Of a DNA stretch of 64,000 nucleotides, positions 2,324-39,172 are shown in pieces (positions within the stretch are counted from its first letter, which is position 1; every line of letters begins with the position of its first letter). Source of the DNA: Macrostomum lignano (Eukaryota); NCBI GenBank assembly GCA_002269645.1, contig NIVC01000230.1:496001-560000 (forward strand), read 5' to 3'. The notes beneath the pieces are model-generated. The model had not been told where the DNA came from and made no database searches. It saw only the letters and a program-made list of their open reading frames with translations. The position numbers and the translations under genes were made by a program.

Positions 2324-2371
2324 TCATGCCGAGTCTTGAATCTGCAGCTCGTATGACAGGCCGCCAGATGT
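2324..2371 (-). CDS. MALRD1: Last coding exon ([15 protein letters not shown])
   Basis: Acceptor tttcag; phase 0 matches donor GCT|GTAAGA at 2460. The 89-nt intron matches the gene's other short introns. TGA at 2324-2326. Confidence 0.65.
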   Translation of the reverse strand, partial: TSGGLSYELQIQDSA

Positions 2372-38300: not shown

Positions 38301-39172
38301 TAAACAAATACTAAACTACAGTAAACAGATACTAAGCTACAGTAAACAGATACTAAGCTAAAGTAAACAGATACTAAACTACAGTAAACAGATACTAAGC
38401 TACAGTAAACAGATACTAAACTACAGTAAACAGATACTAAACTACAGTAAACAGATACTAAACTACAGTAAACAGATACTAAACTAAAGTAAACAGATAC
38501 TAAGCTACAGTAAACAGATACTAAACTACAGTAAACAGATACTAAACTAAAGTAAACAGATACTAAACTAAAGTAAACAAATACTAAACTACAGTAAACA
38601 GATACTAAACTACAGTAAACAGATACTAAACTACAGTAAACAGATACTAAACTACAGTAAAAAGATACTAAACTACAGTAAACAGATACTAAACTACAGT
38701 AAACAGATACTAAACTACAGTAAACAGATACTAAACTACAGTAAACAGATACTAAACTACAGTAAACAGATACTAAACTACAGTAAACAGATACTAAACT
38801 ACAGTAAACAGATACTAAACTACAGTAAACAGATACTAAACTACAGTAAACAGACGTCTGAACTACAGTAAACAGATACTAAGCTACAGTAGAAGGCCGC
38901 TGAAACTAAAATTGCTTTTTTAACCCAGAATAGTTTTTGTCAACTTTGCAATAACAAATAGTTCAATTTGATTATTTCTATCGCTGATAGAATATTCGGC
39001 CTCTATCACTGACAAAAGCAAGTTTTACTACAGCAATGAGCAACTCCCACGGATAAAACAAAAGCCTCTCAGCCTCACCTGCTGCATCAGCAGACCATAA
39101 GCCACTCAAACACGAGAACAGCAGCACCAGAGTCAGCAAAATGGATCTGCAGCCAGGATTGCTGGCAGTCAT
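2324..39172 (-). CDS. MALRD1: Giant MAM and LDL-receptor class A domain-containing type I membrane protein (MALRD1/MLRP-like), ~22 exons, ~29.5 kb CDS, ~9,800 aa
   Basis: Repeated MAM motifs (CDFE...W.R..G.T...GP..DHT.GT..GYY...FWYHMYG...G.W...IAIDD) and LDLa motifs (C...F.C..G.CI....VCD...DC.DGSDE..C) across all long minus ORFs. Exons join in phase with GT-AG sites. Signal peptide at 39079-39172, TM at ~2898-2972. The symbol denotes family architecture, not demonstrated orthology. Confidence 0.92.
2461..2539 (-). CDS. MALRD1: Cytoplasmic-tail exon ([26 protein letters not shown])
   Basis: Acceptor gcttcag; phase 2 matches the upstream donor at 2880. Contains NPLY at 2482-2493. Confidence 0.8.
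2610..2843. repeat. (TTAGAAAT)4 followed by (GACA)n microsatellite, intronic
   Basis: Directly visible; about 50 GACA units. Confidence 0.97.
2881..5028 (-). CDS. MALRD1: Exon with MAM-LDLa-MAM-LDLa-MAM-LDLa plus TM helix ([28 protein letters not shown]); two frameshifts (~3986, ~3000)
   Basis: ORFs 3841-5067 and 2960-4048 overlap and switch frame at SGRQG/DYWINQ. The TM lies in a third frame after the last LDLa. Acceptor tttacag, donor GT|GTAAGT. Confidence 0.88.
5327..14615 (-). CDS. MALRD1: 9,289-bp exon encoding ~16 MAM and 9 LDLa domains
   Basis: ORF 5318-14512 extends upstream in frame ([34 protein letters not shown]) to acceptor atttcag at 14616; donor AGT|GTGAGT at 5326. Confidence 0.93.
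14754..14943 (-). CDS. MALRD1: Exon encoding an LDLa domain and MAM start ([47 protein letters not shown])
   Basis: Read by hand; absent from the ORF track in this frame. Phase 1 acceptor, phase 2 donor AG|GTAG. Confidence 0.88.
15034..17799 (-). CDS. MALRD1: Exon with 5 MAM and 2 LDLa domains
   Basis: ORF 15026-17788; acceptor tttttcag at 17800, donor T|GTATGT at 15033. Confidence 0.9.
17890..18162 (-). CDS. MALRD1: Exon, C-terminal half of a MAM domain plus Thr-rich linker
   Basis: ORF 17825-18133 extended upstream ([14 protein letters not shown]); acceptor attctag, donor C|GTAAGA. Confidence 0.85.
18263..24540 (-). CDS. MALRD1: 6.3-kb exon with 12 MAM and 3 LDLa domains; two frameshifts (~24435, ~20609)
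   Basis: [19 protein letters not shown] from acceptor cattttag, then ORFs 20561-24430 and 18111-20651; donor GATG|GTGAGC at 18262. Confidence 0.9.
24618..25911 (-). CDS. MALRD1: MAM exon with a frameshift at ~25660
   Basis: ORF 25505-25936 switches to ORF 24582-25694 at [20 protein letters not shown]; acceptor ttttctag, donor GAG|GTAGAA. Confidence 0.87.
26003..26230 (-). CDS. MALRD1: Exon: Thr/Pro linker plus MAM start ([11 protein letters not shown])
   Basis: 228 nt, phase 1-1; acceptor tttgcag, donor G|GTACGT. Confidence 0.87.
26322..27638 (-). CDS. MALRD1: MAM exon (~2.5 domains)
   Basis: 1,317 nt, phase 1-1; begins [23 protein letters not shown]; donor T|GTAAGT. Confidence 0.9.
27738..30572 (-). 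CDS. MALRD1: MAM exon (~5.5 domains)
   Basis: 2,835 nt, phase 1-1; ORF 27721-30591; acceptor ttcgcag, donor G|GTAAGA. Confidence 0.9.
30747..30912 (-). mobile_element. tRNA-derived SINE with CORE-like domain, copy 1 (intronic)
   Basis: Homologous to 59584-59764 (shared cacaccctcaattaccccagctaatgct..cccattttacagctggg). B-box-like GTTCGATTCTC on minus. The 3' tail may extend to ~30660. Confidence 0.72.
30935..31380. repeat. (GACA)n microsatellite, intronic
   Basis: About 110 units with occasional CACA/GATA variants. Confidence 0.97.
31398..31763 (-). CDS. MALRD1: MAM exon
   Basis: [10 protein letters not shown]...[10 protein letters not shown]...[15 protein letters not shown]; acceptor ctttcag, donor T|GTAAGT. 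The rest of the track ORF is (GACA)n intron. Confidence 0.87.
31974..32117 (-). CDS. MALRD1: MAM N-terminal exon ([21 protein letters not shown]...DHTTGT)
   Basis: 144 nt, phase 1-1. Confidence 0.87.
32224..32787 (-). CDS. MALRD1: Single-MAM exon
   Basis: [12 protein letters not shown]...; 564 nt, phase 1-1; acceptor ctgcacag, donor A|GTAAGA. Confidence 0.87.
32905..33003. repeat. Short degenerate repeat (gccctaccaagagattgtggc), possible MITE remnant
   Basis: Three to four imperfect copies. Confidence 0.4.
33145..33235 (-). CDS. MALRD1: MAM C-terminal exon ([30 protein letters not shown])
   Basis: 91 nt, phase 0-1; acceptor atttcag, donor G|GTAAGT. Confidence 0.85.
33360..33850. repeat. 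22-bp minisatellite, two subtypes (ggtctggtaaagtggttgcttc / ggactggtagagtggtagctaa)
   Basis: Directly visible tandem array in an intron. Confidence 0.93.
33898..34342 (-). CDS. MALRD1: MAM exon ([14 protein letters not shown]...[10 protein letters not shown]...); 5' boundary uncertain
   Basis: Donor TTT|GTGAGT at 33897. The best acceptor (aaacag at 34343) is one base out of phase with the previous donor, implying another 1-nt deletion or an alternative acceptor (e.g. 34316). Confidence 0.75.
34500..35196. repeat. ~22-bp minisatellite (ccatagaataaacacaccaatc)
   Basis: About 30 copies, each with AATAAA on the + strand. Confidence 0.92.
35216..35575 (-). CDS. MALRD1: Divergent MAM exon
   Basis: DGKYMFPKP...CRLLSPTF...YCLSFFYYI; 360 nt, phase 1-1. 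Confidence 0.82.
35820..36123 (-). CDS. MALRD1: Exon: end of degenerate MAM, linker, start of next MAM ([22 protein letters not shown])
   Basis: Acceptor acacag (phase 0) and weak donor G|GTTCGC. Confidence 0.78.
36273..36529 (-). CDS. MALRD1: Exon 3, degenerate MAM (CITFRYWL...LWQQ...GWQQGQLML)
   Basis: MAM-like motifs; donor GAG|GTGAGT; two in-phase acceptors (36529, 36520). Confidence 0.7.
36712..37320. repeat. 20-bp minisatellite (ggagatcacctaccttcagg)
   Basis: About 30 near-identical copies in intron 2. Confidence 0.97.
37419..37547 (-). CDS. MALRD1: Exon 2 ([43 protein letters not shown])
   Basis: 129 nt, phase 1-1; CNF..C motif typical of MAM starts; donor A|GTGAGT. Confidence 0.7.
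37595..38890. repeat. 21-22 bp minisatellite (aaacagatactaaactacagt)
   Basis: About 60 copies in intron 1; a gcgtc variant at the left end. Confidence 0.97.
39079..39172 (-). CDS. MALRD1: First coding exon, signal peptide [31 protein letters not shown]
   Basis: Hydrophobic h-region, A-x-A type cleavage site, strong phase 1 donor CAG|GTGAG matching exon 2. Confidence 0.75.

Follow-up and report, generated by a model that had tools for sequence, protein, structure and literature searches.

A giant gene encoding MAM and LDL-receptor class A (LDLa) domains lies on the minus strand of Macrostomum lignano contig NIVC01000230.1 (assembly Mlig_3_7), at 39172-2324 of the 64,000-nt stretch that was analyzed (contig positions 496,001 to 560,000; hereafter the window, whose coordinates are used unless another contig is named). 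Between approximately 39.2 and 2.3 kb, very long frames without stops follow one another on this strand, with a maximum of 3,101 codons (14623-5321), and only two Pfam families were detected in the long open reading frames (ORFs), MAM (PF00629) and LDLa (PF00057). The frame-corrected, spliced model has a coding sequence (CDS) of 29,478 nt and encodes a protein of 9,825 aa and 1,092 kDa. We consider it likely that the locus is one gene of 22 exons and 21 introns (77-1,531 nt) encoding a record-size type I membrane glycoprotein of the MALRD1/MLRP family. An initial annotation of the window had placed a start at 39172 and a stop at 2324 on the minus strand, with approximately 29.5 kb of CDS and 9,800 residues, and these values were reproduced almost exactly; its description of a complete path does not hold to the letter, as five one-base frame corrections were required, and it overlooked these five frameshifts in the assembled copy.

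Introns were located by searching each gap for GT-AG pairs and by scoring the spliced product against a MAM profile or, between domains, by splice-site quality. Three junctions were corrected against the annotated proteins of sister copies (P0204 and P0122), and on this comparison the initial junctions 37411/36503, the acceptor 34391, and the donor 17944 were dropped. The break at approximately 18197 was rejected as a sixth frameshift; it is an ordinary 100-nt intron. The gene model comprises the following features.

39172-39079, minus strand: exon 1, with the start codon at 39172-39170
39089..39172, minus strand: signal peptide, residues 1-28 (Met at 39172; hydrophobic segment at residues 7-30)
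37547-37419, 36529-36273, 36123-35820, 35575-35216, and 34316-33898, minus strand: exons 2-6, with GT-AG junctions guided by a hidden Markov model (HMM)
33235-33145, 32787-32224, 32117-31974, and 31763-31398, minus strand: exons 7-10, with HMM-guided GT-AG junctions
30572-27738, 27638-26322, 26230-26003, 25911-24618, and 24540-18263, minus strand: exons 11-15, the stretch covered by P0337
18162-17890, 17799-15034, 14943-14754, 14615-5327, and 5028-2881, minus strand: exons 16-20, with gap-free alignment of P0122, P0124, and P0001
2966-2898, minus strand: transmembrane helix, residues 9756-9778
2539-2461 and 2371-2324, minus strand: last two exons, encoding most of the cytoplasmic tail
2493-2482, minus strand: NPLY motif
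2326-2324, minus strand: stop codon TGA

The start and the exon 1/2 junction of the window gene recur in P0204, a transcript-based model from a paralogous contig, and all of the exon 2-10 junctions are gap-free against this model. MAM domains 1-5 are encoded by exons 2-10 together with the beginning of exon 11; exons 11-15 encode MAM 6-28, the last of which is finished in exon 16, together with the first three LDLa domains (the first at 21430-21338). The remainder of the MAM/LDLa array is encoded by exons 16-20, and the onset of the cytoplasmic tail (KRRLE and part of a V) is contributed by exon 20.

Four introns (35820/35575, 31974/31763, 27738/27638, and 26003/25911) fall at one and the same MAM position, just after DHTxGT (profile position 42/43), and the 3' two thirds of the gene contain hardly any introns and include exons as long as 6.3 and 9.3 kb (the latter at 14615-5327). 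It looks as if a per-domain intron was ancestral and was mostly lost toward the 3' end.

A Pfam scan of the minus-strand ORFs, combined with a local HMM run on the assembled protein, gave 52 MAM domains (51 solid and one degenerate) and 18 LDLa domains, in agreement with the approximately 52 and 18 counted initially. Pfam scores for MAM reached 1,608 bits in one ORF (curated cut-off, 26.4 bits), with 49 complete stretches in addition to split ones, several MAM domains being divided between neighboring frames. Matches to both families greatly exceeded the cut-offs in each of the long minus-strand ORFs, well past what chance would give for the array. After splicing, 51 MAM domains scored 85-192 bits against the local profile; the first (exons 2-4) is degenerate, with scores of 8 bits (local HMM) and 19 bits (Pfam), the latter under the cut-off. 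A profile built up from copies in the window itself gave MAM/LDLa matches from 35940 to 3020, all on the minus strand, and the degenerate first MAM, upstream of 35940, was seen only by Pfam and on the spliced protein. The order of domains is signal peptide, 22 MAM, 30 MAM interleaved with 18 LDLa (including two runs of seven MAM), one helix, and a 47-residue cytoplasmic tail containing NPLY, as expected of a single-pass (type I) membrane protein; the initial annotation had likewise called the protein single-pass.

The core MAM motifs that were tested (CxFE...C.W, DHT, FWY, IAxDD, and the conserved cysteines) were present: in an alignment of 41 copies, C1, F3, E4, C8, W20, P34, C77, A147, and D150 occurred in at least 90%, and D37, W117, and D149 were invariant. 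The LDLa domains matched Pfam, with at least six cysteines in 18/18 and the acidic calcium-binding motif [ST]DE in 15/18. Two flavors of LDLa, CDFxDDCGDxSDE and CNFxxxCxDGSDE, tend to alternate (21430-3020), and a higher-order unit of LDLa-MAM-LDLa-MAM-LDLa plus seven MAM occurs twice. Identity between MAM copies is only 30-45%, which excludes duplicated assembly as an artifactual origin of the array, and DNA self-matches were confined to the intronic tandem repeats; on these two grounds, recent tandem duplication and assembly collapse were both rejected as its source. The array of 52 domains is old and not a product of recent amplification.

The public annotation captures this gene in part. 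The NIVC01000230.1 record carries one CDS at the locus, PAA87461.1 (Mlig025956g1; 5,336 aa), with no other CDS within 10 kb of it in the GenBank annotation. PAA87461.1 opens at 20567, the first Met beyond the break at 20607, and terminates at the stop 3843-3841, which is generated by the frameshift at 3985. Because two of the five frame breaks (20607 and 3985) set its ends, we conclude that PAA87461.1 is a truncated model; without frame corrections it is the longest uninterrupted CDS. Under our model the 5,336-aa "hypothetical protein" and the "unrelated" fragments of the sister copies together become a single 9,825-aa receptor, which corrects the public annotation.

The protein is assigned to the animal family of proteins named for their MAM and LDL-receptor class A domains (vertebrate MALRD1/Diet1 and coral MLRP1/2). 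Nearly all of the matches listed were MAM or MAM/LDLa proteins, most named ones bore the MALRD1/MLRP family name, and the taxa among them comprised sponges, placozoans, cnidarians, spiralians, arthropods, echinoderms, hemichordates, cephalochordates, and vertebrates (chicken Diet1). The ectodomain consists of MAM interleaved with single LDLa modules, and a C-terminal helix is followed by an NPxY tail, a motif found in eight of the inspected homologues; a helix with one or two NPxY motifs was seen in Sycon, Nematostella, Branchiostoma, Haliotis, Ixodes, Glandiceps, and chicken Diet1. One feature speaks against the placement: an EGF-like module before the membrane, seemingly present in many homologues (Diet1, Branchiostoma, Nematostella, and Haliotis, read by eye), was not found by Pfam in the C-terminal ORFs of the window, where the last LDLa runs straight into the helix. 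Such a module is common in the family but does not strictly define it.

The size of the protein was placed in context by running a profile of 41 window MAM copies against 1.84 billion cluster representatives, which gave the following as the most MAM-rich arrays outside the flatworm.

Pycnogonum litorale g7537: 7,512 aa, 38 MAM matches
Ornithodoros XP_064478697: 6,419 aa, 34 MAM matches
Octopus vulgaris CAI9725294: 6,043 aa, 42 MAM matches
Saccoglossus XP_077865040: 5,469 aa, 32 MAM matches

The flatworm protein is the largest and most MAM-rich family member that we could find, although giant genes are often fragmented in annotation, so that absence elsewhere is weak evidence. Larger single-pass proteins occur in other families, such as MUC16 and Drosophila Dumpy. 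The initial suggestion that the size is exceptional for a single-pass protein therefore applies to the MALRD1/MLRP family, in which the next largest members found are those of Pycnogonum (7,512 aa), Acropora (MLRP2, 7,311 aa or more), and Octopus (42 MAM domains), and not to single-pass proteins as a whole. The flatworm protein sets the upper size limit known for the family.

Turning to function, we tentatively propose a surface or apical-endosomal cargo/scavenger receptor that is internalized through NPxY adaptors and uses its MAM array as a long spacer or adhesive stalk, a proposal to which we give slightly less than an even chance. The protein would be located at the cell surface or in the apical endosomal membrane; its calcium-cage LDLa modules would bind ligands; the long MAM array would act as the spacer or stalk; and NPxY would recruit clathrin adaptors, such that the protein would cycle as an endocytic/scavenger receptor. 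The NPxY tail, common to homologues, and the intact calcium-cage LDLa modules are the sole functional clues in the sequence, and they favor this reading. Weighing against it, the role is read from motifs only, and no expression, localization, or ligand data were found in the literature (searched by gene identifiers and for flatworm MAM proteins) or in the supplements of two M. lignano papers.

A mainly structural protein, serving as an apical coat, adhesion, or matrix component with an ectodomain that may be shed and an NPxY motif used for sorting only, is a less probable alternative. MAM domains mediate homophilic adhesion or oligomerization in RPTPmu and meprin, and 52 tandem domains, if extended, could measure roughly 200-250 nm, by a rough estimate from domain dimensions. 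Acropora MLRP1/2, moreover, were recovered from the extracellular skeletal organic matrix (PMC4043741). Intact calcium-cage LDLa modules and an NPxY tail, the latter shared with Diet1/MALRD1 and the invertebrate homologues, are instead both hallmarks of cargo receptors. The structural and endocytic roles are not mutually exclusive. The initial annotation inferred that the ectodomain could reach >100 nm and could serve in a glycocalyx, in adhesion, or in scavenging. A more specific version, in which an intact 1.1-MDa single chain forms a 200-250 nm MAM rod on the apical membrane of gut or epidermis and acts as both the principal structural component of the surface coat and a capture-and-internalize receptor, is speculative and improbable; if true, the coat would be a kind of glycocalyx made of MAM domains in place of mucins, and no other LDLa-bearing receptor would have so long an ectodomain. 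Being transparent and amenable to RNAi and transgenesis, M. lignano could be a model for testing the widespread, functionally obscure MAM/LDLa giants. The likely payoff is modest, namely a family record and a tractable model rather than a new principle.

The existence of an intact chain depends on the five frame breaks. Each shifts frame f to f-1, equivalent to one missing base, and lack of room excludes an intron. Their positions and the corresponding sequences in two sister contigs (L001 and L004, approximately 99.3% and 99.2% identical to the window) or in a protein derived from the earlier ML2 assembly (P0337) are listed here.

25657..25669, minus strand: frameshift N, after 25663; window GCCGGCAG, where ML2-derived P0337 implies an extra base
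24430..24441, minus strand: frameshift P, after 24435; single C, where ML2-derived P0337 implies CC
20600..20617, minus strand: frameshift Q, after 20607; CCC, where ML2-derived P0337 implies CCCC
3979..3993, minus strand: frameshift W, after 3985; window GGG, L004 GGGG, L001 GGCG
2990..3004, minus strand: frameshift X, after 2996, just upstream of the transmembrane helix; window GGG, L004 GGGG, L001 GGAG

An A5 run was dropped as the position of frameshift Q, as P0337 indicated the CCC run. Short introns were also rejected as the cause of the breaks: the GT-AG candidates were 26-50 nt with poor sites, conserved MAM residues would be lost, and the other copies show a plain extra base. Both sister contigs have that base at 3985 and at 2996, and P0337 (4,530 aa) is in frame through N, P, and Q with sequences that cannot be obtained by splicing the window. 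Relative to a sister copy, four of the five breaks are shortened single-base runs. L004 (NIVC01003626.1) gives a direct view of the type of error in this assembly, as its positions 1-2100, near the contig end, contain 17 single-base indel columns versus the window and L001 (11 deleted, mostly G, and six inserted). The Mlig_3_7 assembly was built from PacBio reads with Canu and Pilon polishing and includes duplicated blocks of ≥95% identity that total 180 Mb (PMC5730564); polishing is unreliable in such blocks. No substitution-derived in-frame stop was found in the 29.5 kb, and the comparison of the window with L001 showed 27 synonymous and 21 nonsynonymous changes, for a dN/dS of roughly 0.25, a ratio indicative of purifying selection between copies. 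These results are consistent with the five breaks being, with good probability, consensus errors of the PacBio/Canu assembly in a near-identical multicopy region, so an intact reading frame probably exists in the animal.

The principal competing explanation is that the window copy is a decaying duplicate in which some or all of the frameshifts are real, leaving a truncated product or none while a sister copy remains functional; a real W or X, for example, would cost the product its transmembrane helix. Hidden polyploidy and extensive duplication at near identity are features of M. lignano DV1 (PMC5730564), at least three other copies of the gene exist, and L003, a paralogous contig, either is rearranged or was misassembled. 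P0123, a model from ML2, appears to sidestep frameshift W by means of an artificial intron and hence seems to share the lesion, which suggests that W may be real in at least one copy. We nevertheless regard decay as unlikely: each of the five lesions deletes one base, in four cases from a single-base run, which is the usual form of long-read consensus error, one sister contig contains many single-base indels of like kind, and the absence of nonsense substitutions and the selection between copies both run counter to it. Consensus error therefore remains the preferred explanation for the breaks.

L003 (NIVC01000555.1) follows the window gene from exon 1 to window-equivalent 28106 and continues into an inverted copy of window 26024-33395 (contig coordinates 21727-29082), pieces of which GenBank splits into Mlig025956g2, g3, and g4. 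It is either a rearranged duplicate or a misassembly.

That the locus is a single gene is well supported by the predicted gene structure and by overlapping fragment models. Eight introns interrupt a MAM domain that splicing restores, so the exons flanking them must be joined. The other introns, between domains, are 89-899 nt, and none is followed by a downstream Met and signal peptide. Hydrophobic segments are limited to the N-terminal signal peptide and the C-terminal helix, with no internal signal peptide or transmembrane segment, and the transition from MAM only to MAM/LDLa occurs within one continuous ORF (24457-20564). The three independent fragment models P0337 (residues 1-4495), P0122 (4127-9426), and P0001 (7128-9825) overlap to tile the whole path, and P0204 is gap-free against residues 1-1310. 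The 5' model Mlig025956g4 and the window CDS Mlig025956g1 have the common prefix Mlig025956, which denotes clustering of transcripts at 95% identity (PMC5730564). The weakest section is 28106-20567, where continuity depends on the ORFs, the domain-splitting introns, and one prediction from another assembly (P0337), a dependence that counts against the single-gene model; a protein search found no M. lignano protein at least 90% identical to model residues 2101-4300, and P0337 came from membership of the P0204 cluster. Two or more genes, for example an N-terminal MAM-only gene and a MAM/LDLa receptor gene resolved from a polycistron by spliced-leader trans-splicing, might be entertained because approximately 7% of the transcriptional units in M. 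lignano are transcribed as polycistronic precursors (PMC5730564), MAM-only giant proteins are known in other phyla, and the GenBank annotation is fragmentary with transcript clusters under two names (Mlig025956 and Mlig012801), but this arrangement is very improbable given that the transition lies inside one ORF, that every exon boundary falls within a MAM domain or across a short intron lacking a following Met and signal peptide, that no internal hydrophobic segment exists, and that the fragment models overlap end to end, with P0122 spanning sequence named under both clusters.

The large introns (37601-38891, 36708-37324, 34419-35196, 33387-33849, 30935-31381, and 2649-2846) are all mostly tandem repeat, the arrays being a 21-mer (×60), a 20-mer (×31), two 22-mer arrays, (AGAC)n (×112), and (ACAG)n (×50). 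Just upstream of the start codon lies a 21-nt tandem array of 75 copies (39767-41346) that produces spurious long ORFs on both strands; it has the same period as the intron 1 array and a different unit. Farther upstream is a CT-rich low-complexity block with strong strand skew (41951-43899; GC skew, -0.45), and a G-rich 13/27-nt repeat lies downstream of the gene (1149-1592). Plus-strand ORFs at 47347-48780 and 54903-55541 matched the Pfam families RhoGAP (65 bits) and LRAT (50 bits), respectively, and are likely to be exons of other, unrelated genes that lie upstream of this one.

Among known systems, the closest solved structures are the LDLa repeats of LRP2/megalin (the best match) and the MAM domains of enteropeptidase, MDGA1, an SR-C-like scavenger receptor, and neuropilin. 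The flatworm protein shares calcium-cage LDLa modules, single-pass topology, and an NPxY internalization motif with LRP2/megalin, LDLR, and VLDLR, and may work like these endocytic receptors. It is not a member of the LDL-receptor family, as it lacks the YWTD beta-propeller and EGF precursor-homology domains (no Ldl_recept_b or EGF family was detected in any ORF at E ≤ 0.01) and its LDLa modules stand singly between MAM domains rather than in clusters. MAMDC4 (endotubin, or apical endosomal glycoprotein) is a type I membrane protein with MAM and LDLa domains that resides in the apical endosomes of absorptive gut cells; it is much smaller than the flatworm protein and was absent among the named matches listed. 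The only named vertebrate proteins among those matches were MALRD1-named. Vertebrate MALRD1 (Diet1), which acts on FGF15/19 in enterocytes, resembles the flatworm protein in its alternating MAM/LDLa domains, single C-terminal helix, and NPxY tail (chicken Diet1, P0182), and differs in its length of approximately 2,100-2,400 aa compared with 9,825 aa and 52 MAM domains. Chicken Diet1, examined by eye, also seems to have an EGF-like module and two NPxY motifs, whereas the flatworm protein has no such module and one NPxY. Giant MAM/LDLa arrays like that of the flatworm are found in Acropora millepora MLRP1 and MLRP2 (B3EWZ5 and B3EWZ6; 5,145 and 7,311 aa, both fragments) (PMC4043741). The coral proteins were identified in the matrix of a mineral skeleton, a structure that the flatworm lacks; the flatworm protein is also longer and bears clear signals for membrane anchoring and sorting. 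The arrays of Pycnogonum, Ornithodoros, Octopus, and Saccoglossus belong to the same family and are all shorter (5,469-7,512 aa), with fewer MAM domains (32-42); the Saccoglossus units, by eye, seem much more alike than those of the flatworm (30-45% identical).

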